Assembly (NCBI GenBank): GCA_010909165.1
Contig: MU008162.1
Coordinates: 1,612,001-1,676,000 of the forward strand
Source: Anthoceros angustus
Lineage: Eukaryota > Plantae > Anthocerotophyta
Reading direction: 5' to 3'
DNA: 64,000 nt
Program-made: the position numbers and the translations under genes
The notes under the pieces: model-generated
What the model was told of the DNA's origin: nothing
Database searches by the model: none
Seen by the model: the letters and a program-made list of their open reading frames with translations, nothing else
In this document: piece by piece, positions 8,101-60,542 of the stretch
Layout of the letters: each line of letters starts with the position of its first letter
How positions within the stretch are numbered: the first letter of the stretch is position 1

Positions 8101-10654
8101 TCTGCGTCCCAGCTGTTTTGTAGGAGGCAATAGCTTGTATGCCAACATCTTGCTCTGCAAGGGATTTGTCAAAGCTAATGTCCTTGGCAGGGCGGACCTC
8201 CATTTGACTGCTACTCCATGATTCCTGCCACAAGGAACTACAGTGAAGACCGTCTTCACCAGCAAGCATGCAGTTCGGTGCAAAACGTAGAGAAGTCTCC
8301 AACAGTCAAAGCTAAGCCCTTGCAGGTCATCCTAAGGTTGTCAAGAACGGTACCAGAGCATCCCTGTCTACGAACTTGTAGGGAGCATAGAAATCCCTCC
8401 ACTTCCTTGTCGCTTTCACCATGATCTAGAGCCAGTATGCACTTTGATTTGGACAATGGAACAGAACTTGTTTTGCAAATCAGTCATAAACTCCATCGAA
8501 CCAGGACATAGAGAAGTCTGCCCAACCAGTAGCTGCCCCACCTCAAGACTCACAGTATATTCTTGCACTTACTGGCTCTCTACCAAGGACAATGGCCTCA
8601 GCTGCAATCTCCTTTTCACTGCCAAGAGACTTCCATTTCCTTGGTTTTTCTTCTTCTTCTGCTGCTTTTCATCTGCCTCCAGGTCTGCTTGAACCTTCAC
8701 CACTCATCAGGGCCACCAACAAGTAAGCTTTAGCCACCAGAATCTTCTCTTTACGACGCATCACAACTCATTCAGCATCTGGTCACCTTCAGAAATCCTC
8801 TTTTGCTAGAAGGGTGACGCAGACTTCAATGTTCATAGCATCCCCATATCTGTCGTTCAGATTGTAACGCACAAGAATGTCCTCTTCCGGATAATTCTGC
8901 ATGTGGGCTTAACGAAGCAAGAGCCATATGAGTCCTCCTTTTGCCATCCTTTGTCCCTGCGCAGAGCGCAGAGCGCAGACCGCATTCGCATTTGCACGCC
9001 CACAACAAAATGCACGTCGCAATGTGGTAGAATTACAGTACCGCCAGAGCCCCTTTAATCGGGTGAAAATCTGAAATTGCGGCTCTGGCTTGAATGTCAT
9101 CCATGAGCATCTTCTTTTGCAAGGTGTAGAGCGAGCCATGTTTAGCCTCCTTGAGGAATCTGAACATCTGCTCACTGCAGAGTATTTCGGCCTTTCGACT
9201 TTCTGGAAGGTCTCGAGGCTCGTACTGTACGCAGTTGTTGCGCTGCCTTTCCCTACCGAATGTTTCATTTCACACAAAAGACGAGTCAACTTGCGGTTAT
9301 CGAGGAGGGCATGCTAGTAGAGGTGCAAAATTCAAGACTCACACGCTTACTGCATTGTCTGCGTCCCAGCTGTTTTGTAGGAGGCAATAGCTTGTATGCC
9401 AACATCTTGCTCTGCAAGGGATTTGTCAAAGCTAATGTCCTTGGCAGGGCGGACCTCCATTTGACTGCTACTCCATGATTCCTGCCACAAGGAACTACAG
9501 TGAAGACCGTCTTCACCAGCAAGCATGCAGTTCGGTGCAAAACGTAGAGAAGTCTCCAACAGTCAAAGCTAAGCCCTTGCAGGTCATCCTAAGGTTGTCA
9601 AGAACGGTACCAGAGCATCCCTGTCTACGAACTTGTAGGGAGCATAGAAATCCCTCCACTTCCTTGTCGCTTTCACCATGATCTAGAGCCAGTATGCACT
9701 TTGATTTGGACAATGGAACAGAACTTGTTTTGCAAATCAGTCATAAACTCCATCGAACCAGGACATAGAGAAGTCTGCCCAACCAGTAGCTGCCCCACCT
9801 CAAGACTCACAGTATATTCTTGCACTTACTGGCTCTCTACCAAGGACAATGGCCTCAGCTGCAATCTCCTTTTCACTGCCAAGAGACTTCCATTTCCTTG
9901 GTTTTTTCTTCTCTTCTTCTGCTGCTTTTTCATCTGCCTCCAGGTCTGCTTGAACCTTCACCACTCATCAGGGCCACCAACAAGTAAGCTTTAGCCACCA
10001 GAATCTTCTCTTTACGACGCATCACAACTCATTCAGCATCTGGTCACCTTCAGAAATCCCTCTTTTGCTAGAAGGGTGACGCAGACTTCAATGTTCATAG
10101 CATCCCCATATCTGTCGTTCAGATTGTAACGCACAAGAATGTCCTCTTCCGGATAATTCTGCATGTGGGCTTAACGAAGCAAGAGCCATATGAGTCCTCC
10201 TTTTGCCATCCTTTGTCCCTGCGCAGAGCGCAGAGCGCAGACCGCATTCGCATTTGCACGCCCACAACAAAATGCACGTCGCAATGTGGTAGAATTACAG
10301 TACCGCCAGAGCCCCTTTAATCGGGTGAAAATCTGAAATTGCGGCTCTGGCTTGAATGTCATCCATGAGCATCTTCTTTTGCAAGGTGTAGAGCGAGCCA
10401 TGTTTAGCCGCGGCTTTGTCGATGTTGACGATCTTGAGCGTGGCCTCGGTGAGGAAAATGGAGAGCACTCCCGCAGGCACCGTCTCTGGGGTTTGAGGCG
10501 TTTGCGCTGTGCGCGTAGTGGAAGCTGCGGAAGGCCCGGATTCTGGCCTGGATCCCGCCGAACTCTTCTGCGAGGCAGGCGCTGAGCCAGGAGGATCAGA
10601 CCCTCCTTGCGCGGCGGCAGGAGGCGTTCCTTTCGCGGCGGCAGCATCAGCCAT
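5171..10654 (-). CDS. WDR63: Axonemal dynein intermediate chain, WDR63/DNAI3/IC140-like, multi-exon; carries an internal 1.26-kb tandem duplication
   Basis: Exons give DIQARAAISDFHPIK, KWKSLGSEKEI, QYEPRDL...DALQQNEIMDVFEDDF and WD40-type segments (SAIDWMPGRRGIVAAAC, GYVLVWSF-like, IVLDLHWLP, HNGPVRSLHHSPFFDNILLSVDIWTFAIW, GTMEVWDLLDHSHQP, IAIGDIQGILHIMEIPRNL). Stop TAG at 5171-5173. The orthologue name is from remembered motifs, not a search. Confidence 0.8.
7884..10402. repeat. Direct tandem duplication, units 7884-9140 (1257 bp) and 9141-10402 (1262 bp)
   Basis: Identical ORF-track translations offset by 1257-1262 bp. The 8-bp microhomology gtttagcc occurs at 7883, 9140 and 10402. Confidence 0.95.
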
Positions 10655-22250: not shown

Positions 22251-23201
22251 GGGGCGGTTGGGGGTTATAGGGTAGATTAGTGCGGAGGAGCTAAGCTACA
22301 AGTCATCTTCCAAGTCAACCACAAAGTTCTCTGAACGTTGCTTCTGAAGAAATGCCCCTTATCTGGATCACCACATCATCATGAAGAATTTCCATAAATT
22401 TTATCAGTAATAATTAATAATTATATATATTCAATATATATATATTTTAAATATAGATATTTTTGCCTAATCTACATTCCATCATTGCATCGTTAATCAA
22501 CAAGAATGCTGAAGGTAACATTCAAGCTCTTAGCACAATCACACTAAGGTATGAAATATATGTTGGCAGCAGAGCCGGGGAATTCGTGGAGCAGCTCGGG
22601 AGCGAGGTTGCGGTCACCTTTGGGGATCTTGGGCGGAGCATGGCGGCATGCGTCGGCACACCAGATCGTATGCCATGGAATCCCGTTTGGAACATCCAAG
22701 TGGTCCACCAGGTCATCCAAGTCTGCTCAACCTTAGCCGGCATCCTGCCAACACCAACCAGAACATAGGGTGAAAGAGGGCATCAGATTTGCTTTTGCGG
22801 TGTGCTAGCGGGAAACGTAGATGTGGGTAGCTACAGAGTCGTAGGTGTAGCAGCCGATGTCGCATGGCCAGTGGGTGCTACCTGACTTCGAACTTGTTGT
22901 TCCCCAGAGGTGCGTTGGTGCTCACAAATCACATGATCATCACATTTGTGCACAGATGATCATCAGACAGTTGTATGGCCTGCTCACCTATGGAAGACGA
23001 CATAAAGCATGTGGTTTGGCAGCCACGGTGAACACATCCATCGCGCTGTCTGCTTCTATGTAATTGGCCATGCAGGCCACTGGGCCGGAGCACGATCCTG
23101 AGACGAAGCCCAGCCTCATCGGATTCTGGAATCCTGGATGGCAGTTTGGGCTCTGTTCGCCAGCTGCTGGGAAACGCCACTAGTACTGGCTCGATATCAA
23201 G

Positions 23202-41300: not shown

Positions 41301-42192
41301 TTGGCTAGGAAAATTCTTACACCGACATTTTACAATGCTGGCACTATTTATAAATCGATAAATTTGTATAACATTTTACAATGTATTTGCAATGAACATG
41401 CCACATCGCAATTTCACTAATATATAGCCTCATAAATGACATAAATCAGGAAAAGGTCTCTTCCACATATTTACAACGGCATTTGCGACAAGCATGCCAC
41501 ATCGCAATCTTACTAATATATAACCTCATAAATTACATAAATAAGGAAAAGGTCTCTTCCAAAATTTTACAACGGCATTTTACGACAAACATGCCACATC
41601 AGCAAATAATATATTTATTCATGGATATTGGCTGGCTTGTGCATTTTACAACCATAGTTACGACGCATGTGCCACGTCAAGAATATACAATAAATGAATA
41701 ATCCAATAATATAACATAAATTGGAGAAACCATTTTACAATGATATTTGCAATGAGCTTGCCATGTCAGCAAATAATAAATTTATTTATAGATATTTATA
41801 TAAAATGGTTTTCATGCGTTTTACAACCATAGCTACAATGCATGTGACACGTCAAGAATACAAAAAAAAAGATAATCCCATAACTAACATAAATCCAGAG
41901 AAACATATTTACAACATCATTTGCAACGAACTTGCCACATCAGCAAATAATAAATCTATTCATAGATATTCCAATAAATGGTATTATTCCAAAAATCAAG
42001 TCTTGCACAATTTACAACCACATCTACAACAAACATGGTTTACAACGTCTTTTACAAGTACCGTTTTACAACATCCTTTATGCCACGTCATTATAAATTC
42101 AACAAAATGTAGTTTTATTAACAAATAACCCCCATAGTTTTCTAAATCAAAAGAGTTTATGCACAATTAACAACGTCATGTACAACGAGCAA

Positions 42193-42298
42193 GCCATGTC
42201 AACAAACCCCGTTGTAAAATTGTGTCAACATGCCATGTCAACAAATCCCGTTGTAAAATTGTGTCAACATGCCATGTCAACAAACCCCGTTGTAAAAT
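42193..42298. repeat. 39-bp tandem repeat (about 2.7 copies) in the CACTA right subterminal region
   Basis: gccatgtcaacaaa(c/t)cccgttgtaaaattgtgtcaacat; each copy carries the GTTGTAAAA motif. Confidence 0.9.
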
Positions 42299-42715
42299 CC
42301 ATGCCACATCATATTAGTTAGGAACCCTTGTTGTAAATGTTCAAAAACTTACAATGTGGCTTTGAGTAGTAAGAGTGTTGTAGTTTCCTCTAACTAAACT
42401 TAGACCCATTTGTAAAAGGTAGCCCTCCTTGTAGTGAAGGTTGGTTGATTGTCATTTGGACATCACTTCTGGATGCCCTATAAGACAATAAAATTGCCTA
42501 CAAGATGGTGGCAAACTACTCGGACACGGTGATCACCTTACCCTCGAAGGTTTGATCTCGCCTCCCTCATTTGATCAACCAAGCTTTTCAACTTGTTGAC
42601 ATGTTGTTGAAACAGTGTAAGCCCTCGACCATCTTGAAGTTGGAGAATTGACTTTCCAGCATTTCGCTCACAATGCTCTTCTCGTCGTTGTGCGAGAATT
42701 TTCCATGCATCCTGC

Positions 42716-43915
42716 GAAGAGACACACTCGCTCAATTGTGAGAGAATGTCATCGACATAATCGGGATAATATTAGCCAAGGCTTTCGCATCCTTGTCTTC
42801 AGCCGAGCGCCATCCTGAAGTCCATTTCCACAAACTTCCACAATCCTTTGTCAATGAGAGATTTAGCTTCAACTTCCATAAAAGTTCGCCATCAAACTTC
42901 TCCACTTGACGCGTAGTCTCCATATGCACACCTCGAAGTTATGCAAAGACAAGACTAAAGTTCCTCGCACCAAAACTACTATCAAGCTTCACGAAATTGC
43001 AAAGGAGCTTTCACAAACACTTAGTCAGAACTACAACAATGCAATAGAAGACAAGTGGCAGGTCCCACAGTGGTGCAGTACTACGCATCTCACGAACCAT
43101 GCTCGATACCATGTTTGAGCGTAATTCCCAGTTCGTACATTAGAAATGGTGTGCTATGCATACATATATAGGCTTTGGCCTTGACATACTCTCGATAGTA
43201 TGAAACCCTATCACAGGATAATCTTATATACTTCTAGGATTTATACTCATAACTCTAATATGTGATGTGTTGCACCAATCCTATAGATTTCTAATATGAA
43301 GAGACACACTCGCTCAATTGTGAGAGAATGTCATCGACATAATCGGGATAATATTAGCCAAGGCTTTCGCATCCTTGTCTATATCCTTTTGAGCGCCATC
43401 ACGGAAGTCCATTTCCACAAACTTCCACAATCCTTTGTCAATGAGAAGAGATTTAGCTTCAACTTCCATAATGTGAAGTTCCTGCCATCAAACTTCTCCA
43501 CTTGACGCGTAGTCTCCATATGCACACCTCTGGAAGTTATGCAAAGACAAGACTAAAGTTCCTCGCACCAAAACTACTATCAAGCTTCACGAAATTGCAA
43601 AGGAGCTTTCACAAACACTTAGTCTGTAGAACTACAAACAATGCAATAGAAGACAAGTGGCAACAGTCCCACACAGGGTGGTGCAGAGTACTTTACGCAT
43701 CTCCTGAACCATGCTCTGATACCATGTTTGAAAACAGTAATTCCCAGGTTCAGTACATTAGAAATGGTGTGCTATGCATACATATATAGGCTTTGGCCTT
43801 GACATACTCTCGATAGTATGAAACCCTATCCTGGGATAATCTTATATACTTCTAGGATTTATACTCATAACTCTAATATGTGATGTGTTGCACCAATCCT
43901 ATAGATTTCTAATAT
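42716..43915. repeat. Direct tandem duplication of the Copia A1 gag 5' end plus 5' LTR
   Basis: Units about 42716-43297 and 43298-43915. The junction uses the 8-bp microhomology gaagagac shared by gag and the flank outside the LTR. Confidence 0.85.
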
Positions 43916-44238
43916 GAAGAGACTCCGGACTGACGGTTTGAAACTAACCATCGTGGGGCTGTTGAGCTTCTACTGGGTGGGTGAAGGCCTCTGCCCAAGT
44001 TGGCACCATAAGAGCAGGTTGAATGTGACCATGACCTGAGTTGGCAAGCTCATGTCGGCTGGAGCCTAGTTAAAAAGTGAGCTTGCCATGGCTCTTGCAT
44101 GGACTGGTGAACTTGTCCATCGCGGCCTGTAGGAGTGAAGCCTGCAAACGATATGATGTTGCTGGCAACCGATGGAGGTATAGGTTAGGTCTGACGACTT
44201 CGCAGGGGTGGAACTGGTGGCAATCACAAACAGAGAGA

Positions 44239-47200
44239 TGTTAGAAATCTATAGGATTGGTGCAACACATCACATATTAGAGTTATGAGTATAAGTCCTA
44301 GAAGTATATAGGATTATCCGAGGCGAGATAGGGTTTCATACTATCGAGAGTATGACAAGGCCAAAGGCTATATATGTATGCATAGCACACCATTTCTAAT
44401 GTCTTGAACACAGGAATTCTGCTTTCTAACATGGTATCGAGCATGGTTCGGAGATGCGAAAGTACTGCACCACCGTGGGACTCTTGCCACTTGTCTTCTA
44501 TTGCATTGTTTGTAGTTATGCACTAAGTGTCCGTGAAAAGCTCGTTTGCAATTTCGTGAAGCTTGGTAGTAGTTTTGGTGCGAGGAACTTTTGTCTTGTC
44601 TTTGCATAGCTTTCGAGGTGTGCATATGGAGACTACGCCAAGTGGAGAAGTTTGATGGCGTGAACTTCACATTATGGAAGTTGAAGCTAAAATCTCTTCT
44701 CATTGACAGAGGATTGTGGAAGTTTGTGGAAAATGGACTTCCGGATGGCGCTGAAAAGGATATAGACAAGGATGCGAAAGCCTTGGCTAATATTATCTGA
44801 ATGTGTCGATGACATTCTCTCACAATTGAGCGAGTGTGTCTCTTCGCAGGATGCATGGAAAATTCTTTGCACAACGATGAGAAGAAGAGCATTGTGAGCG
44901 AAATGCTGGAAAGTCAATTCTCCAACTTCAAGATGGTTGAGGCGACACTTCAACAACATGTCAACAAGTTGAAAAGCTTGGTTGATCAAATGAGGGAGGC
45001 GAGATCAAACCTTGAGGGTAAGGTGATCACCGTGTCGAGTAGTTTGCCACCATCATGTAGGCAATTTTTATTGTCTTATAGGGCATCCATAGCGATGCGT
45101 CCAAGTGATAATCAACCAACCTTTGATGAGGTGGTTAGATTACTCCTACAAGAGGAGCTTGATGGTTCTTTCCAGACACAAGGCAACGAAGGCTTGGCAC
45201 TCTTCTTCAAGAAAGGCACATCACGGCGGAGGACCTCGCAAGCCAAGTCTCTAGAAGGGACAAAGGATACAAATGCAAAGAGAAAGGTGAAAGGCTTTTG
45301 TTATTATTGCAGGAAGCCCAATCACCACGCAAAGGATCAGAATAAGATTGGCGGACTTGAAGAAGGGAAATCATCCCAAGCTAATCAAGTCGTGAGAAGG
45401 ACCAAGAACACATCTTCGCGTGCTTCACCGAAAGAGATCAAGCGACTTCATCAAAGAAGGATGAGAGTTTGTACCTTGACTCGGTGCATCCCAAAGATTT
45501 CGATTATAACCTTCCTTGGTTCTCAAGCTACGAGGTATTGCGGAGGGGCATACGGTGGCGCTTGGTGACAATAGGTCACATGACATCAAGGGAAGAGGAG
45601 TGTTACGAGTCCATCTTCCGGAGGATACGTATTAAGGACGTGCATCATGTGCCTCATCTTGCGAGGAATCTTCTTTACGCAAAAATTGCCGATCACAGTC
45701 ATGAGGTTGTGTTCAATTCCAAAGGATTTCGGATCCAATCCGAGCAGCCTGAGTTATCGAATGCTAAAGTGATTGCTAGAGGCGTCCGAGTAGGAAATTT
45801 GTACAAGTTGTGTGCTTCTGTGGGAAGGCAAGCTTGCACCTTTATGGACAGTTCGCAAAATAGCATTGGATCTATTGATTTATGGCATCAACGTCTAGGG
45901 CACATTGGTGTGGACAATATCAGTTGATGAAGAACCAACATATGGTTCTGAGCTTGGATTTGAAAGAAGTGGGTGAGCCGCAATTATGCCAAGGGTGCAT
46001 AATGGGAAAGCTACACGAACTAAGTTCCCAAAGATTGCGACGAGCAAAGATGGCGCTAGAGTTGGTACACACGGATGTGTGTGGTCCAATGAAAATCCCA
46101 CTCATGGCGGAGCCCGCTACATTCGGTGTTTGTGGATGATTTCACTAGGAAGACTGGACATATCTTATGAAGGAGAAATCCTGTATTTACACTCTTCAAG
46201 GAATGGAAAGCCATGGTGGAGAACGCAAGTGGACAACGTCTGAAGACTTTGCGTAGTGACAACGGAGGTGAATATATCTCCACTAACTTCCAACGCTTTT
46301 GCAAGGAGCATGGAATTGGAAGGCAACTAACCATCCCTCACACACCGGAGCAAAATGGAGTGGCGGAGCGCAAACTTAGAGTCCGTGGAGGCGCTAAATG
46401 CATGTTACATCATAGTGGCTTGGAAGTACGTTTTGGGGTGAGGCATTTACACAACCTATGTTTTGAATCGAGTTCCAACCAAAGCTATTGTTGGAATGAC
46501 CCGAGGAAGCGTGGTCAGCGTCAAGCCCGACATAAGCCATTTGAGGATCTTTGGTTCGATGGTTTATGCTCACGTTCAAGCAAACCCGAACAAAATGGGA
46601 TCCAAAAGGCGTGAAGTGCCTTATGCTTGGATACTCTCGAGATTAAGGGCTCTGGGTTGTATGATCTTCAAGGAAGAAGATCATTTTAGCGGGGCGTTGT
46701 ATTTAATGAGGTTGTGGAACCCATCAAAGGAGTGGGAGCTCCAACCCCGGTTATCATGAAGGATCCGGCGTATGTTGACGACCCTAATGAGGATTCTGAC
46801 TATGATGACACTCTTGAGCAACCTGCTCCTGAGCCCAACGAACCTTCTCAACAATGCGACATAGAGGGGGGAGAAAGGGAAATTCCCAATGTCGCGATTG
46901 GAGAAGTAGATGAAGATCAAAGCATTGTCGTAATTGACGAAGAAGAGGAAGCTCGAAGTATTCGAGAGAGACAACCAATCTTGAGAAGATCAACGAGACA
47001 ATGGAAACCTTCACAGAAGATCTTGGAATCCATGAATGCATGTGTGTATGAGGAGGCATGGTTGGCAGATGCCGGCGAACCACAAAGCCTAAAGGAAGCA
47101 TTGGAAGGACCAAAGGCAAAGGAGTGGAAAGAAGCCGTGACGTGAGTATAACTCTCTTCTCAAGAACAAAACTTGGGCAATCACTCCTCTACCTCACGGA

Positions 47201-48794
47201 AGGAAGAGCATAGGATCAAAGTGGACATTCAAGATTAAGCGCAAGGTCGATGGAAGCATAGAGCGCTACAAGGCAAGGGGTGGGGAAAGGATATACACAA
47301 GTCCCGGTGTGGATTATCGATACCTTCTCCCCGCCGCTAAGATAGCATCTATCCGAGCTCTCCTAGCTATCGCCCGCCGACATGGAGATACATCATATGG
47401 ATGTTACATTGCGTTCTGAATGGAGATCCGGATGAAGAGATCTACATGGACCAGCGAGGATACGAAATACCGTGACGCGAGGGAGAGGTATGTAGGCTGC
47501 TAAAGGCTCTGTATGGTCTTAAGCAATCGCCTTGCTTGGTATCGTAAGGTTGATGTGTTTTTCCAGTCTAGAGGTTTCAAGAAAACCAATCGATTGGAAT
47601 ATCTATGTGAAGAGAGTGGGAGAATCCATAATTATCATTGCTTTATGTGGACGATTTGATTATTGCTAGCAATGACATGGAACTCTTAGACTCGAAAGCA
47701 AAGCCTTAATGCAAGCTTTGACATGAGAGATTTGGGTGAGCTCCACTATTCCCTAGGAATAAAGGTGGAAAGGAATAGGGCTAACAAAGCATCTCTTTGA
47801 GCCAACAAACATATGTGGAGACCATATTGGGCGTTTCGGCATGCAAGATTGCAAACCCATGAAGACGCCAATGATCTTCAATGAGAAGCTATCGCAGGAG
47901 ATGAGCCCTACAACCGAAAAGGAGAAAGAGAAGATAGATAAGACTCTCTATCAACGCGTTGGCTGTCTTACATATTTGGCAACAGGACAAGGCCCGACAT
48001 TGAGAGGCGGGAGTTGTGAGTCGATTCTTGGCCAACCACGGACAACATTATCAAGCGATCAAGAGGATATTCGGATACTTGCGGCACAAAACATTGGAAG
48101 TTGAAATACCAAAAGGATCGACATGAAGACGCCTGTGGTTGGATTTTGTGATTGATTAAATGGAGATGTCGATGGCCGCAAGTCTACCAGGATATGTATT
48201 TATGCTATTTGGGGAGCCATTTCATGGAGTAGTAGGCGTCGACCATTGTGGCTTTGTCCTCTGAGCGGAGTACATGGCAATATCTGCGCAACAATGGAAG
48301 CAATATGGCTACGACGATTGCTCAAGAAATGGGATTTAAGCGAAGGGTGCAACAACCATCTTCAACGACAATCAAGGTTGCATTTACTTAGCAAAGAATG
48401 CTACTTTTCACGTGAGGACGAAACACATTGAAGTAAAGCATCACTTCATCGAGAGAAAGTTCAATCCAAGGAGATAGAGCTAGCGTATTGTCCCACGGAC
48501 ATGCCCGCAGATGTTTTGACCAAAGGGTTGACTTTAGAGAAGCACGTTAAGTTTAGCAAGATGTTAGGCTTAAAAGAGTAGCGATGTGTTGAGTGGGAGT
48601 GTTAGAAATCTATAGGATTGGTGCAACACATCACATATTAGAGTTATGAGTATAAGTCCTAGAAGTATATAGGATTATCCCAGAGCGAGATAGGGTTTCA
48701 TACTATCGAGAGTATGTCAAGGCCAAAGGCTATATATGTATGCATAGCACACCATTTCTAATGTATTGAACCTAGGAATTACTGTTTTCTAACA
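44239..48794 (+). mobile_element. Full-length Ty1/Copia LTR retrotransposon A2 (same family as A1)
   Basis: LTRs 44239-44431 and 48600-48794, PBS tggtatcgagc at 44432, PPT gagtgggag before 48600, and TSD AGAGA at 44234-44238 and 48795-48799. gag-IN-RT-RH fragments are frameshifted. Confidence 0.95.
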
Positions 48795-49133
48795 AGAGAT
48801 GCGTTCACAAGTCTGAATTCTGTAGACATAATAAGCGACTTCAGCCCCGGGACTCAGGAGGCACATTACAATCATGGAGTAGTACACCGATCACATACAA
48901 GAAGGCTTAAGACAAAGGCTTTATTTAGTACTGGTCTGAAGCGGCACCTGGATTGCTTCTCCAGATTGTGCAAGCTGCAGCTCAAACATCGACACACGGG
49001 AGTTTTGATGGGAATCTCTCCGAAGAAGCTTGTGCATCGCAGCCTTCAGGGCAGACTATATCTATAAGTAATCCGACATTGCAGATGTGGCTGATTACAA
49101 CTGACGGGCCTCATTGCAAGCTGCGAATTCATC

Positions 49134-49529
49134 TCAGGCGCGGCGGATCTTGAGAGTGACGCCCAAAGCGGTGTAGCTGCCGCACACCTGATTGTCACCC
49201 GATGATCTGCAAGTGGTGGTGATATTGTTCAACGCGTCAGCTGCTGTGTGGCAGGGAACGCAGACGTCTTTGAGGCCATCGATGTCTAGAGCCGCGGTGC
49301 CGGTAACGACCATGGTACACGACCCGCTGTTGGTTATCTGGCAGCACATCCTGTCGTCTGGGAGACTTAGTAAGTAAGCCACGCCTTTGAGGGCATCTTC
49401 TTTGGTGGGACACACCTTATCGGCGGTGCAGATGGGTGCGCAGTCAGCCGTCGCCCCCCTGGGCATCGCCCACATTGCCAGGCTGAGCAGCAGCATGAGA
49501 GCCGCCGCGGACTTAGCTGCCGTGGCCAT
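49134..49529 (-). CDS. Intronless 131-aa small secreted cysteine-rich protein (10 Cys), family unassigned
   Basis: Clean ATG-to-stop ORF with a hydrophobic signal peptide (MATAAKSAAALMLLLSLAMWAMPRGATA), patterned cysteines and an upstream TATA box. Confidence 0.8.
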   Translation of the reverse strand: MATAAKSAAALMLLLSLAMWAMPRGATADCAPICTADKVCPTKEDALKGVAYLLSLPDDRMCCQITNSGSCTMVVTGTAALDIDGLKDVCVPCHTAADALNNITTTCRSSGDNQVCGSYTALGVTLKIRRA

Positions 49530-49696
49530 GGCTGAACCAGAAAATCTTGCAAGCTTGCCGGAAGGATTTGGACGTTGCTACTCGGCTTCGCCTGGTACGC
49601 GTCTCAGATGATCGATCGACGTTTCTTGCAGCTTTAGAGGCGGCTGGTGACCAGTCTCGCAGCTGCTGTGGTTGGAATTGAGGGGAGCCTGGCCTT

Positions 49697-49704
49697 CTTT
49701 TATA
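49697..49704 (-). promoter_or_regulatory. TATA box of the secreted-protein gene
   Basis: TATAAAAG on the minus strand about 170 bp upstream of the ATG at 49529. Confidence 0.55.
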
Positions 49705-49859
49705 CCTGATGGCCTGATAGCCTTCTACTTCTGGCAAGGTTTGTGCTGCACCTTACACCGGGTGACCATTCGATGGCCCACATTGTAGATCACGACGGCC
49801 AAAGCCTGGACGACCAGGATGCATGGGGTTTCACTCCACCAGTCTTAGACAGCTATTAT

Positions 49860-50692
49860 CTGGATTCATATTCCAACCTCGGGTAACGTACTAACTTGAG
49901 GCCTGTAAGAATCAAATGTGCGAATATTTACCCACATCAAAATTGAAGATGCGCAGCAGCCCGACCTCGGGTTGAACTGATCGATGATTTGCTGGAATGT
50001 ACAAGTCGATGGGAAAGCAGAGGAAGGAGTGGAATAAATGGCTGACACCACAGGACGGATTCCACTGTGGCTAATAGGTGGTCAAGATTTTTCGAACGGC
50101 ATTCTGCTCAATTTGTGCTGCTACAGCAGGGAGATGCATCACAAATTCCACAAGTACAACCTATTCCGTCATAAGCAGCGGTTCAAAGGAGGTTTGTCAC
50201 TTCCCTCGTCACCCGCGACTTCACCCTGTTTGCTCGGTCACGTGAAGTCTTTCCGAGGGACCGCTTCAGGTCCAAAATTCCTTCTACAGTTCACAACAAT
50301 TGAGCCGCTTCAATAGCCTTCACAAGATCGATAAGCAATGGTGTTCCAGCCTTCACACCGGAGAGTCGCTCCTGCACAGAAGACCAAGCTACTGTACGGA
50401 CACATAATGGGGCTGTTGGCTCCAGCGCCAGGAAGGGGTCTGATGGCTTGAACAGTGGGCTCAAGGATACAAGCTCTTGGCTTGTTCCTGAAGAGATTGC
50501 CCTGTACTTCTGAATACAATATCTATACAAGTGCACAGGGCATCGAGGGCCAGCTCCAGGGCCAGAACCCGAGCCCGGGCATCCAAGCCCGGCCCTCGGC
50601 CCTGGCCAAGGCCCAAGATCCCCAAAGGTGACCACAACCTCGCTCCCCAGCTGCTCCACGAATTCCCCGGCTCTGCAGCAGTCGCTGCTCAT
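49860..50692 (-). CDS. Unidentified multi-exon gene (gene X), divergent from ubiquitin-RPL40; partial copies at about 52273-53200 and 55458-55780
   Basis: gccgccATG context at 50692 (MSSDCCRAGEFVEQLGSEVVVTFGDLG...) and exon-like blocks with GT-AG flanks (...PEVGLLRIFNFDV|GLKLVRYPRLEYESR*). The internal frame cannot be resolved because the copies differ by indels. Confidence 0.4.
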
Positions 50693-51073
50693 GGCGGCCC
50701 TGGCAGGCGATCCTGGCAAACCCTAATGTCACAAATCCTAAATGCGAGAGTGGCAAATCGGCACACCAGTTTTAGCTCTCGAATGGATTGGAGATGGAAG
50801 ACATGGGTGCACTCAGCCTGGAGTGTTCTAGATCTGCCATCCAAGCTTCTCGCAAGCTTCAGTCCCAAGCCTGAAGACATCAGGGGCATCTACGCTGCCT
50901 AGGGACGCAACTGTTTATTTGCTTCAAATATCCCTGTTATTTCCTCGTCTACCCTTGATTGCGTAGCTGACCGTCGGGTCTATCATATATATTTTATTCA
51001 CGTTACTTCCTGAACTGACCACTGGCTAGTTAGCCAACCACAGTTAGGGTTAGGGCTTTTCAGGTGGCTATAA

Positions 51074-52108
<1,035 letters not shown>

Positions 52109-53370
52109 ATGAGTGACTCTCGCCAGCAGATACCCTGGGTTCGTTCCAGGCTTTGCTCAGGCTTTTTTGCCATGTACCATCGAATGCTATCGATGTTTAT
52201 TCTGTAGTACCATGGGAGTGTTTGCCCCACGGTGTTTCAATGCGAATCAGGAAAGGTGTTAGGAACCTCAGGTTGAACTGATCGATGATTTGCTGGAATG
52301 TACAAGTCGATGGGAAAGCAGAGGAAGGAGTGGAATAAATGGCTGACACCACAGGACGGATTCCACTGTGGCTAATAGGTGGTCAAGATTTTCGAACGGC
52401 ATTCTGCTCAATTTTGTGCTGCTACAGCAGGGAGATGCATCACAAATTCCACAAGTACAACCTATTCCGTCATAAGCAGCGGTTCAAAGGAGGTTTGTCA
52501 CTTCCTCGTCACCCGCGACTTCACCCTGTTTGCTCGGTCACGTGAAGTCTTTCCGAGGGACCGCTTCAGGTCCAAAATTCCTTCTACAGTTCACAACAAT
52601 TGAGCCGCTTCAATAGCCTTCACAAGATCGATAAGCAATGGTGTTCCAGCCTTCACACCGGAGAGTCGCTCCTGCACAGAAGACCAAGCTACTGTACGGA
52701 CACATAATGGGGCTGTTGGCTCCAGCGCCAGGAAGGGGTCTGATGGCTTGAACAGTGGGCTCAAGGATACAAGCTCTTGGCTTGTTCCTGAAGAGATTGC
52801 CCTGTACTTCTGAATACAATATCTATACAAGTGCACAGGGCATCGAGGGCCAGCTCAGGGCCAGAACCCGAGCCTGGCATCCAAGCCCGGCCTCGGCCCT
52901 GGCCAAGGCCCAAGATCCCCAAAGGTGACCACAACCTCGCTCCCCAGCTGCTCCACGAATTCCCCGGCTCTGCAGCAGTCGCTGCTCATGGCGGCCCTGG
53001 CAGGCGATCCTGGCAAACCCTAATGTCACAAATCCTAAATGCGAGAGTGGCAAATCAGCACACCAGTTTTAGCTCTCGAATGGATTGGAGATGGAAGACA
53101 TGGGTGCACTCAGCCTGGAGTGTTCTAGATCTGCCATCCAAGCTTCTCGCAAGCTTCAGTCCCAAGCCTGAAGACATCAGGGGCATCTACGCTGCCTAGG
53201 GACGCAACTGTTTATTTGCTTCAAATATCCCTGTTATTTCCTCGTCTACCCTTGATTGCGTAGCTGACCGTCGGGTCTATCATATATATTTTATTCACGT
53301 TACTTCCTGAACTGACCACTGGCTAGTTAGCCAACCACAGTTAGGGTTAGGGCTTTTCAGGTGGCTATAA

Positions 53371-54402
<1,032 letters not shown>

Positions 54403-55210
54403 ATGAGTGACTCTCGCCAGCAGATACCCTGGGTTCGTTCCAGGCTTTGCTCAGGCTTTTTTGCCATGTACCATCGAATGCTATCGATGTTTATTCTGTA
54501 GTACCATGGGAGTGTTTGCCCCACGGTGTTTCAATGCGAATCAGGAAAGGTGTTAGGAACCTCAGGTTTTCCAACCTCTGGACCTGCATGTAACCTTTTC
54601 GTTGTTGCAATTTTTGGCTCACAACCTGGAAATGCCACCGGCTCCCAATAACTTGCTAGGTCGGACATCGCAGTCTTTGGCGGTGTTTCTCTGACAACCG
54701 AAGAGACGGTGTCCGCCAACAGCCATCTCCTGAAAGGTGAACGGGACCCGGGAGCCAAGCCAACAGGCAACCCCGCGTGCGGCGACTCGAATGAGGTCGC
54801 AGCCTACCGGTCGCCGCAGGCGTGAGTAGGTGGGCTTGGCCCGGCACGACCCCCGGGAGCACCTTCGCACAGGGTTAAGGGTGGGAATAGATAACAAATA
54901 TCCCTCTTCGTGTTCGCCTCCTGTTTTGGCACGCTCTGCCACTGTGATCTCTGCCGGGGGCTGGGTCCTCAGAGTTCCCGCCTCCCCACGATCCGCTCGA
55001 CGCCGCGCTGCGCAATTTTGTGAAGTTCTTTGCGTTTGCGTCGTCGCCAGCACAGGGTCGCGCATTGCGGCGTCTCGCAGGCGGAATTGGCGCACGCAGG
55101 AAGGGAGGATCTCACGCTCGCCTGCTGCGGCTGCCGGTTGCAGGAGGCCGGGCAGCTGGTTCCGGGGCCTGGGAAGAGACACTTTTTTTTTTTGCGGTGA
55201 TGGCGGGAGC

Positions 55211-55457
55211 ATGCTTTGCAGCCGGGCATGCAGTGAGTGCGCGGCAGTGGTCCGGGCTGCATCGCCTGGTTTCCGTTTCGTCCGGGGACGGCAGCTGCAG
55301 TGTGGCTCAGGAGCCGTGTCGCTGCGCTGGCCGCAGTCGCAGAATGGGACGCTCGGGTCTGCTGTGGCTGTTGAAGGTTGGATTGCTGGAAGGACTGCGT
55401 TTTCTGTGATTTGATGTGGTTTAGGGATTGACAGGACTGGACCGGGACTAAATGTTG
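55211..55457 (+). pseudogene. G6PD: G6PD 5' fragment (transit-peptide exon and start of exon 2)
   Basis: Matches 60543-60797 apart from small indels; truncated at a duplication junction. Confidence 0.75.
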
Positions 55458-55943
55458 GAGCGGCCTCGGCCCTGGCCAAGGCCCAAGATCCCCAAAGGTG
55501 ACCACAACCTCGCTCCCCAGCTGCTCCACGAATTCCCCGGCTCTGCAGCAGTCGCTGCTCATGGCGGCCCTGGCAGGCGATCCTGGCAAACCCTAATGTC
55601 ACAAATCCTAAATGCGAGAGTGGCAAATCAGCACACCAGTTTTAGCTCTCGAATGGATTGGAGATGGAAGACATGGGTGCACTCAGCCTGGAGTGTTCTA
55701 GATCTGCCATCCAAGCTTCTCGCAAGCTTCAGTCCCAAGCCTGAAGACATCAGGGGCATCTACGCTGCCTAGGGACGCAACTGTTTATTTGCTTCAAATA
55801 TCCCTGTTATTTCCTCGTCTACCCTTGATTGCGTAGCTGACCGTCGGGTCTATCATATATATTTTATTCACGTTACTTCCTGAACTGACCACTGGCTAGT
55901 TAGCCAACCACAGTTAGGGTTAGGGCTTTTCAGGTGGCTATAA

Positions 55944-56976
<1,033 letters not shown>

Positions 56977-57780
56977 ATGAGTGACTCTCGCCAGCAGATA
57001 CCCTGGGTTCGTTCCAGGCTTTGCTCAGGCTTTTTGCCATGTACCATCGAATGCTATCGATGTTTATTCTGTAGTACCATGGAGTGTTTGCCCCACGGTG
57101 TTTCAATGCGAATCAGGAAAGGTGTTAGGAACCTCAGGTTTTCCAACCTCTGGACCTGCATGTAACCTTTTCGTTGTTGCAATTTTTGGCTCACAACCTG
57201 GAAATGCCACCGGCTCCCAATAACTTGCTAGGTCGGACATCGCAGTCTTTGGCGGTGTTTCTCTGACAACCGAAGAGACGGTGTCCGCCAACAGCCATCT
57301 CCTGAAAGGTGAACGGGACCCGGGAGCCAAGCCAACAGGCAACCCGCGTGCGGCGACTCGAATGAGGTCGCAGCCTACCGGTCGCCGCAGGCGTGGTGAG
57401 TGGGCTTGGCCCGGCACGACCCCAGGAGCACCTTCGCACAGGGTTAAGGGTGGAATAGATAACAAATATCCCTCTTCGTGTTCGCCTCCTGTTTTGGCAC
57501 GCTCTGCCACTGTGATCTCTGCCGGGGGCTGGGTCCTCAGAGTTCCCGCCTCCCCACGATCCGCTCGACGCCGCGCTGCGCAATTTTGTGAAGTTCTTTG
57601 CGTTTGCGTCGTCGCCAGCACAGGGTCGCGCATTGCGGCGTCTCGCAGGCGGAATTGGCGCACGCAGGAAGGGAGGATCTCACGCTCGCCTGCTGCGGCT
57701 GCCGGTTGCAGGGAGGCCGGGCAGCTGGTTCCGGGGCCTGGGGAAGAGACACTTTTTTTTTTTGCGGTGATGGCGGGAGC

Positions 57781-58987
57781 ATGCTTTGCAGCCGGGCATG
57801 CAGTGAGTGCGCGGCAGTGGTCCGGGCTGCATCGCCTGGTTTCCGTTTCGTCCGGGGACGGCAGCTGCAGTGTGGCTCAGGAGCCGTGTCGCTGCGCTGG
57901 CCGCAGTCGCAGAATGGGACGCTCGGGTCTGCTGTGGCTGTTGAAGGTTGGATTGCTGGAAGGACTGCGTTTTTCTGTGATTTGATGTGGTTTAGGGATT
58001 GACAGGGACTGGACCGGGACTAAATGTTGGAGAGTTGTTCTGGCAGTGAAGAGCTCGGCGGCCACCAAGGGCTCCGTTGCGATCAAGGAAGTGGTGCCCG
58101 CTCCCGTGCAGATTGAAGATGGACCTGCGCTGTATGGCTCCGACAAAAGCAGCGAGTCGACAGTCAGCATCACGGTTGTCGGGGCGTCTGGAGACCTGGC
58201 GAAGAAGAAGATCTTTCCAGCCCTATTTGCGCTGTACTACGAAGGTTGCTTGCCCAAGGTGTGTTGGCCAACTGCCGAGAGGGACGACTCTGCTTGTAGG
58301 TTCAAGGTCCTGTCGCGGGTTTTTCTCATCTTTTGACTATTTGGTGCAGCATTTTACGGTCTATGGATTCGCTAGGAGTAAGATGAGTGACGAAGAGTTG
58401 CGTAACATGATCAGCGGCACGCTTACTTGTAGAATCGATCAGAGGTGCATATTATGTCCAAAACTGTGACTTTGTTGCGGTCCCTGCTGGACGACTTCCT
58501 TGATGTTGCACAGCTAGTTGTTTGCTCTCTTTGGTAGAGGTCACGTAGGTGATATCTCTCTACTCCCAGTTGGGTGGACTTGTGGTTGTGAAGCTCACGA
58601 ACGCTGTGTAGGGAAAACTGCGGGGACAAGATGGAGCAGTTTCTCGCTCGCTGCTTTATCACTCTGGACAATATAGTTCTGAGGAAAGCTTCGCGGATCT
58701 CGACAAAAAGCTACAGGGACAAGAGGTAAGCAGGTCTTCTGCTTATGCTTACTCTACCTGGGTCCTCACCTCACACTGGTTGGATAATGGAATTCTTGCA
58801 TTTGGTGCTATCATGACAAGAGATACCAGACTGTCTAGTCGCTTGCGGATGTCTGTTTGGCTGGAAAGAGTTATTGGTAAGTGGTTGTGGATGGCTTTGT
58901 AGGAAGGCAGACTGGCCAACCGACTGTTTTATCTCTCTATTCCCCAAACATTTTATTGACGTGGCACGGGTGCAGTCGTTCTGCCTC
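57781..58987 (+). pseudogene. G6PD: G6PD 5' half, truncated copy
   Basis: [20 protein letters not shown]...NRLFYLS with homopolymer deletions relative to 60543-61760; ends at the gcctc junction. Confidence 0.85.
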
Positions 58988-59737
58988 ATCTTTGCTGGCA
59001 AGCAGTTGGAGGATGGCCGCACTCTCGCGGACTACAACATCCAGAAGGGTAGGGTTTCCGGCTCGTTTTTGCTAGAGAAGCGTCGGATGTTTTGGGTTAG
59101 GGTTTTAGGTCGGGTAACTAATTCCTGGCCTTTGTGCTCTAGAATCGACGTTGCACCTGGTGTTGCGGCTTCGTGGTGGCATTATTGAGCCCTCTGATGG
59201 CTCTCGCAAGGAAGTACAACCAGGAGAAAGTGATTTGCCGGAAGTAAGTATATGAACACGGCCTCCAGAATAGGGTTTGAGTGTCATTCTGTGGGAGTTC
59301 GTTTGTGACAGCCATGGGTCCACGAAGTTTGACTCCTAAGCTGTTCCAGTGTTTTGGAGATGAATATGAGACCCGAAATCAATCCGTCACCGTTATCCGT
59401 GTGTCAGTTTGAACTATTTTCTGCCTGACTATGCCGGGATGGGACATTACGAAAGCGAGGACCAGTACTCTTATCGTAGTGTCTAAATCTGCGTGTGTTT
59501 GTGTTCAGCTCCTGACTTGAGGTTCTGATGTGAAACACAGGTGCTACGCCCGTCTTCACCCGAGGGCCGTGAACTGCAGGAAGAAGAAGTGTGGTCACAG
59601 TAACCAGGTACGATACCCGGAGGGTCTGTCGCCCATGTCCGTCCTTTTCGTTTCCATATGCCTTCCACTGCCCTCAGAATATCTCATGCGTTTAATCTGT
59701 TCTTCCGCAGTTGCGTCCCAAGAAGAAGATCAAGTAG
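58983..59737 (+). pseudogene. RPL40: Ubiquitin-RPL40 copy 4, 5'-truncated and fused to a G6PD exon
   Basis: Begins at the gcctc microhomology inside exon 2 ([11 protein letters not shown]); 2-bp deletion in exon 3. Confidence 0.85.
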
Positions 59738-60542
59738 ATGAGTGACTCTCGCCAGCAGATACCCTGGGTTCGTTCCAGGCTTTGCTCAGGCTTTTTGCCA
59801 TGTACCATCGAATGCTATCGATGTTTATTCTGTAGTACCATGGGAGTGTTTGCCCCACGGTGTTTCAATGCGAATCAGGAAAGGTGTTAGGAACCTCAGG
59901 TTTTCCAACCTCTGGACCTGCATGTAACCTTTTTCGTTGTTGCAATTTTTGGCTCACAACCTGGAAATGCCACCGGCTCCCAATAACTTGCTAGGTCGGA
60001 CATCGCAGTCTTTGGCGGTGTTTCTCTGACAACCGAAGAGACGGTGTCCGCCAACAGCCATCTCCTGAAAGGTGAACGGGACCCGGGAGCCAAGCCAACA
60101 GGCAACCCGCGTGCGGCGACTCGAATGAGGTCGCAGCCTACCGGTCGCCGCAGGCGTGAGTAGGTGGGCTTGGCCCGGCACGACCCCCGGGAGCACCTTC
60201 GCACAGGGTTAAGGGTGGGAATAGATAACAAATATCCCTCTTCGTGTTCGCCTCCTGTTTTGGCACGCTCTGCCACTGTGATCTCTGCCGGGGCTGGGTC
60301 CTCAGAGTTCCCGCCTCCCACGATCCGCTCGACGCCGCGCTGCGCAATTTTGTGAAGTTCTTTGCGTTTGCGTCGTCGCCAGCACAGGGTCGCGCATTGC
60401 GGCGTCTCGCAGGCGGAATTGGCGCACGCAGGAAGGGAGGATCTCACGCTCGCCTGCTGCGGCTGCCGGTTGCAGGAGGCCGGGCAGCTGGTTCCGGGGC
60501 CTGGGAAGAGACACTTTTTTTTTTTGCGGTGATGGCGGGAGC

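Follow-up and report, generated by a model that had tools for sequence, protein, structure and literature searches.

An intronless hornwort gene predicted to encode a secreted KP4-fold protein, with relatives in liverworts and a fungus

In the 64-kb stretch of Anthoceros angustus DNA analysed here (the window), positions 49134-49529 of the minus strand hold an intact open reading frame (ORF) that starts with ATG and consists of 131 codons plus a stop in a single exon. The features of the locus are given below in window coordinates.

49134..49529, minus strand: complete, intronless coding sequence of a predicted secreted KP4-fold protein (ORF listing and homology)
49446..49529, minus strand: predicted signal peptide, residues 1-28, cut after an A-T-A motif (by eye, -3/-1 rule)
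49137..49445, minus strand: predicted mature domain, 103 aa with 10 Cys, in the order strand-helix-strands-helix-strands (AlphaFold2, VIA-align)
49278..49280, minus strand: Asp codon at mature position 56, in place of the 'ICG' Cys (alignments A2 and A3)
49699..49704, minus strand: candidate TATA box, TATAAA, 175 nt upstream of the ATG (sequence)
48920..48925, minus strand: candidate polyadenylation signal, AATAAA, 208 nt past the stop codon (sequence)
44239..48780, plus strand: flanking Ty1/copia LTR retrotransposon, ending ~350 bp beyond the stop codon of the gene (Pfam and direct repeats)
49964..59892, no strand assigned: array of ~2.3-kb units, at least 99.5% identical, starting 435 bp upstream of the ATG (repeat comparison)

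The predicted leader, read by eye, contains a single Lys and a hydrophobic core, with an A-x-A site ahead of residue 29, and hydrophobic leaders also open the proteins of the relatives described below. A preliminary description of this DNA had reported an intronless ORF for a secreted protein with 10 Cys and a TATA box 5' of its ATG, and the features that it quoted were exact, the signal peptide being predicted by eye and the TATA box being a candidate. The GC3 of the ORF was 0.72, compared with 0.53-0.67 in the window's other long ORFs, and no second copy or paralogue of the gene was found within the window. A word-index search of a collection of 15 billion proteins with the hornwort protein returned no match, not even to itself, and an exact look-up in the same collection found no recorded gene with this protein as its product, indicating that the ORF is unannotated in the public collections searched.

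The gene occupies a unique island of 1.2 kb, with the copia element on one side and a young repeat array on the other. The copia element is compact (~4.5 kb), its LTRs (44239-44418 and 48600-48780) are 96-99% identical, and remnants of gag, pre-integrase and integrase were recognized by Pfam over several ORFs. The units of the array are arranged head to tail with 99.5-100% identity (49964-52264 and 52265-54558, with partial units at 55461-57130 and 58983-59892), and a 335-aa ORF lying inside it (54619-55626) had no match in Pfam. Because the array starts at 49964, the unique promoter region is confined to 49530-49963. Elsewhere in the window, a 69-nt piece of the 2.3-kb unit is also present at 22566-22634, and an AT-richer stretch (41385-43923) holds short tandem arrays whose units repeat every 96, 174 and 39 nt (41395-42298), along with a duplicated block of ~600 bp (42716-43923). 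Contamination was considered as a source of the gene and rejected, since the contig that carries it is of plant origin, as indicated by the copia element, and in view of the homology described next.

An exhaustive phmmer search of 1.84 billion representatives, with the mature part of the hornwort protein as the query, yielded six matches at E ≤ 1e-3, five of which were true; the other, P0006, a repetitive protein of 640 aa, was discarded as spurious. P0001 (E 9e-7, 43% identity) came from AT-rich ENA metagenome contigs, P0002 (E 6e-5, 37% identity) from a GC-rich Logan contig, P0003 (E 2.8e-4, 33% identity) was a hypothetical protein of the pezizalean ascomycete Geopyxis carbonaria, P0004/P0010 (E 3.2e-4) was a hypothetical protein of Marchantia polymorpha, and P0005 had cluster mates of 174 aa and 467 aa in JGI and Logan. 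P0001, P0002 and P0005 represent three sets of environmental eukaryotic contigs, and no named tracheophyte, moss or alga was among the phmmer matches at this threshold. The domain-only alignment A3, used in a word-index search, brought in a protein of Marchantia paleacea and nothing else new; the same kind of search with alignment A1 was dominated by low-complexity words and gave back only multi-domain relatives, and a metagenome pattern scan with alignment A2 returned P0001-type contigs only. Pattern scans of limited sensitivity over bacterial and archaeal genomes and viral contigs revealed no relative.

We found that all of the relatives share one domain of ~100 residues, with a pattern comprising an early Cys, a 'DA' in helix 1, 'CCQ' (or 'C.Q'), 'CT.M', 'ICG', 'C..C', 'AG..LN.IL..C' and 'V.G'. 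The hornwort domain is 42-43% identical to those of the AT-rich environmental contigs, 37% to P0002, 33% to that of Geopyxis and 30-31% to those of Marchantia. When profiles were built by leaving one member out, with E-values scaled to Z = 1.84e9, the hornwort protein was recovered with 64.8 bits (E 5.5e-13) over mature residues 5-103, the Geopyxis domain with E 6.1e-10 from a profile of non-fungal members only, and the Marchantia domains with E 1e-17 to 1e-22. Judged by these sequence similarities, the hornwort, Marchantia, Geopyxis and environmental sequences form one real family. A chance ORF was likewise rejected, given true phmmer relatives to E 9e-7 among the 1.84 billion representatives and the leave-one-out E-value of the hornwort protein itself.

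No Pfam model matched the hornwort protein at E ≤ 10, and none matched any of its relatives; the classes without a match include defensin, LTP, GASA, DUF26, Kp4 and Hce2. The earlier remark that the protein fits no common plant Cys-rich class was correct. The sequences of solved structures contained no meaningful match to the hornwort protein, and the A3 profile gave chance matches among PDB sequences. The CCQ...ICG...CxxC family is previously undescribed and has no Pfam model.

AlphaFold2 gave an unusable model from the single sequence (pLDDT 46) and, with the 12-sequence domain alignment A3, a model with pLDDT 88.7 and pTM 0.81. In mature numbering, this model contains a strand, a helix (15-27), four strands (33-35, 42-48, 51-57 and 62-64), a second helix (65-78) and two further strands (89-93 and 96-102), arranged as an antiparallel sheet with the two helices on one face. 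When the model was compared by VIA-align with 48,161 representative solved chains, the two best were Zt-KP4-1 (8acx_A; Z 11.1, 94 of 103 residues, 2.6 A), which is of the Ecp2/Hce2 type, and the Ustilago maydis virus KP4 toxin, UmV-KP4 (1kpt_B; Z 9.4, 88 residues, 2.5 A), so that the KP4/Ecp2-like fold guessed in the preliminary description is borne out on the predicted model. These were followed by the fungal lectins Y3 (5v6i; Z 7.7) and LDL (4nds; Z 7.4), the DUF26 ectodomains (6grf and 6gre; Z 6.2 and 6.1) and Gnk2 (4xre; Z 5.2), and the next chain, at Z 3.7, was unrelated. The folds of these seven top entries have already been grouped together in the literature, where Zt-KP4-1 is described as carrying an Hce2/Ecp2 domain and KP4-fold proteins are divided into four structural groups, of which two lack Pfam domains (PMC12382754).

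An independent Foldseek search placed the same KP4 chains on top with a probability of 0.96-0.99 and TM of 0.55-0.65, at E-values of only 0.03-0.16, and the viral structure library BFVD contained no meaningful match to the model. In ESM features, the hornwort protein and P0001 were nearest to the same three fungal secreted-protein clusters, with scores of 0.85-0.89; in one of the neighbouring clusters (resemblance scores 0.88-0.89), 12% of the members carry Hce2, which is a consistent lead only. The protein also has the superfamily trait of being small, secreted and disulfide-rich, with 131 aa, a predicted leader and 10 Cys in 103 mature residues. On the predicted model, therefore, the hornwort protein falls within the KP4 structural superfamily at the fold level (sensu de Guillen et al. 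2025). We are highly confident that 49134-49529 is a real gene of the CCQ...ICG...CxxC family whose product has the KP4 fold.

Based on the alignments and a table of Cys columns, the family core consists of eight Cys, at mature positions 6, 34, 35, 43, 56, 62, 65 and 79, of which the hornwort protein has seven. The 'ICG' Cys, replaced by Asp in the hornwort copy, is kept in all 11 other aligned domains, and three Cys of the hornwort protein (positions 2, 12 and 88) were not seen in its relatives. Since one core Cys was lost and three were gained, the total stays even at 10. Covariation suggests bridges 34-65 and 35-62 at the sequence level: one domain of a four-domain protein lacks the Cys at both 34 and 65, and the 'CCQ'-type pair 35 and 62 is replaced in the 'C.Q..C' type by a pair at ~38 and ~58. 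A 43-56 bridge is plausible because these positions lie opposite each other across the 42-48/51-57 hairpin, and 6-79, the pair that remains once 43-56 is assumed, would be the fourth. We infer that the hornwort protein may have a re-wired set of bridges, for example 43-88 and 2-12.

The loci of the relatives differ in domain number and state of preservation. In M. paleacea, a single uninterrupted, intronless ORF of ~487 codons makes up the locus (L013, 10001-11464; MUAA02000093.1) and encodes a signal peptide followed by four KP4-fold domains in tandem, of which three are almost the same in sequence. The public model of 153 aa (Mapa_013878) is mis-spliced and removes most of this ORF. Public annotation thus either omits genes of the family, as with the hornwort gene, or mis-models them, as with the four-domain ORF of M. 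paleacea. A signal peptide and four domains are likewise present in the environmental proteins of 467 aa. The linkers of the four-domain liverwort proteins contain no dibasic sites, and these liverwort proteins look more like tandem-domain proteins, as in DUF26, than processed polyproteins. In M. polymorpha, the copy at the same locus (L006, 8306-9075; L014), 85% identical in DNA to that of M. paleacea, comprises two domains and is broken: its reading frame meets a stop codon at L006 8423-8425 and is shifted within domain 2, near 8900-8935. The NCBI assembly and an independent Logan assembly show these two lesions in identical form, and the annotated 190-aa M. polymorpha protein sidesteps them by an intron and an early stop.

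The Geopyxis gene, also intronless, lies on a 533-kb contig amid ordinary fungal genes (thiolase, MCU and fungal rhodopsin). The N-terminal 95-109 residues of its product are 36% identical to the product of a separate 108-aa gene 2.6 kb away (L007, 3089-3415 and 6001-6285); because this N-terminal module also stands alone nearby, the Geopyxis protein is taken to be a local module fused to a KP4-fold domain. The ENA contigs (L001-L004, L008 and L009) encode two paralogues, 84% identical in protein sequence, of a 137-aa family member with 9 Cys; these contigs, AT-rich (35-41% GC) and of low coverage, come from two metagenome studies and are probably host DNA of a eukaryote, possibly a moss. Apart from the gene itself, we found no synteny between the hornwort locus and the Marchantia or Geopyxis loci.

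The hornwort gene might be decaying or silent, a family member stranded among transposable elements from which no functional protein is made. The absence of a gene call in the public collections, the loss of the conserved 'ICG' Cys, the copia element and young repeat array on the flanks and the visibly broken copy in both M. polymorpha assemblies would agree with such a fate. Against it, the ORF has its full length, running from a start codon through a predicted signal peptide and an entire domain to a stop where members of the family usually end, the Cys count is even, the model is of high confidence and candidate TATA and poly(A) signals are present. We consider decay or silencing unlikely.

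As to the origin of the gene, a maximum-likelihood tree of 13 domains resolved only the Marchantia pair, so that no donor is named, and Geopyxis is about as distant from the hornwort protein (33%) as the liverworts are (30-31%). The preliminary description had proposed a horizontal acquisition, to be refuted by homologues across green plants. The fungal relative in Geopyxis and the fungal-type fold agree with horizontal transfer, whereas an event specific to the hornwort is not supported by the Marchantia relatives or by the nearest relatives, which lie on AT-rich eukaryotic contigs rather than in fungi; green-plant homologues were found by phmmer at E ≤ 1e-3 in bryophytes only. We read these data to mean that bryophytes have either had the family for a long time or received it on more than one occasion.

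A recent, lineage-specific transfer from a fungus to the hornwort, in which an intronless effector-type gene was domesticated for defence, would account for the lack of introns, the fungal-type fold, the fungal relative, the fungal ESM neighbours and a GC3 slightly above that of the neighbouring ORFs. It is nevertheless very improbable, since the nearest relatives lie on the AT-rich environmental contigs at 42-43% identity, with Geopyxis at only 33% and close to Marchantia, liverworts hold the family at a conserved locus, the candidate TATA and poly(A) signals are plant-like, and the 1.84 billion representatives searched by phmmer included no close fungal donor.

The family might instead be an old, vertically inherited one of bryophytes that had no fungal donor, with the Geopyxis gene the result of transfer from plant to fungus or of a common origin with DUF26/Gnk2. 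Geopyxis carbonaria fruits on burnt ground beside Marchantia and mosses, and its protein is a fusion with a module found alone next door. In addition, hornworts and liverworts stand on two sides of the deepest bryophyte split, a single fungus was present among the phmmer matches, and DUF26 has the same fold (Z 6.2). Against these points stand a model whose Z-scores are much higher with the fungal KP4 proteins (11.1 and 9.4) than with DUF26, the lack of any named moss, vascular plant or alga matching at E ≤ 1e-3, and the overwhelmingly fungal membership of the KP4 fold superfamily (PMC12382754). The single fungal match is moreover a lower bound, because a lone hornwort sequence used as the phmmer query would miss most of the diverged fungal members. 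On balance, we regard a purely vertical history as rather doubtful. Because the family is common to at least one fungus and has a fold otherwise typical of fungi, an exchange of genes between fungi and bryophytes or early land plants is likely, and the case for a fungal origin of the bryophyte genes is evenly balanced.

Taken together, the data are probably best explained by an intact single-exon plant gene for a secreted, disulfide-stabilised KP4-fold protein with a putative apoplastic role, a gene that would go back to at least one old transfer between fungi and bryophytes. The protein would be exported via the secretory pathway to the apoplast, where, by analogy with its structural neighbours, a stable disulfide-rich KP4-fold protein may inhibit fungi or other microbes or perturb Ca2+ fluxes, and the patchy spread of the family would reflect at least one such old transfer and not a recent event in the hornwort genome. 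Both Zt-KP4-1 and UmV-KP4 are inhibitors of fungal growth, and Ca2+ gradients are changed by moss KP4 (PMC12382754). An antimicrobial or Ca2+-related role, suggested by this analogy, is put forward tentatively, because the lectins and DUF26 have the same fold and the fold therefore does not fix the activity; sugar or glycan binding, as in Y3, LDL and Gnk2, would be a less likely alternative.

Among fungal toxins and effectors, those with the KP4 fold form a large class. It is conceivable, if speculative, that a second, previously unrecognised family with the killer-protein fold, unrelated in sequence to moss KP4, moved between fungi and early land plants, that hornworts have kept it with a single domain and liverworts as a secreted protein of four domains, and that in the apoplast it serves these plants to fight or to regulate the fungi with which they live. 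If hornworts, liverworts and a fungus share a KP4-fold family of their own, this would be the second case of the weapon-type KP4 fold in bryophytes, would point to a candidate protein with antifungal or Ca2+-modulating action in lineages in which immunity has hardly been studied, and, as a sequence bridge, would help to examine the relationship between fungal killer proteins, fungal lectins and plant DUF26.

Among known systems, the best structural match is Zt-KP4-1 (Zt-NIP1) of Zymoseptoria tritici (PDB 8ACX), a member of the Ecp2/Hce2 group (PMC12382754). The hornwort protein resembles Zt-KP4-1 in its small size, its secretion (here by prediction), its many cysteines and the packing of two helices against one side of an antiparallel sheet. 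In contrast to Zt-KP4-1, it is encoded by a plant and not by a fungus, shares only 8-10% sequence identity with it, has no match to Hce2 (PF14856) even at E 10, and belongs to a family with a different Cys pattern, in which a CC pair covaries with a C-x2-C located ahead of helix 2. The second-best structural match, UmV-KP4 (PDB 1KPT), is 13-14% identical to the hornwort protein, and the Pfam family Kp4 (PF09044) matched neither this protein nor the family domains at E ≤ 10. The position of the C-x2-C also differs, being before helix 2 in the hornwort family and after helix 2 in the KP4 toxin.

To our knowledge, the moss KP4 genes and the distantly similar DUF26 are the only well-known cases of the KP4 fold in plants, and our literature search returned no paper tying KP4-type proteins to hornworts or liverworts. 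The moss KP4 genes, a precedent for a fungal-type killer-protein fold in a bryophyte genome, are reported as acquired from ascomycetes by Guan et al. (2023), as cited in PMC11228847, PMC12513842 and PMC12382754. The hornwort and liverwort family is distinct from the moss KP4 family.

DUF26/Gnk2 (PF01657; 6GRF, 6GRE and 4XRE) and the lectins Y3 and LDL (5V6I and 4NDS) belong to the same fold group, with Z-scores (5.2-7.7) clearly below those of the KP4 proteins. As in DUF26, the liverwort members occur as tandem domains, and the Cys-x(4-6)-Cys-x2-Cys stretch of the relatives recalls the C-x8-C-x2-C of DUF26 with a different spacing. However, PF01657 gave no match, the hornwort copy has D at the first Cys of this stretch, and the C-x2-C covaries with the CC doublet and not inside the motif.
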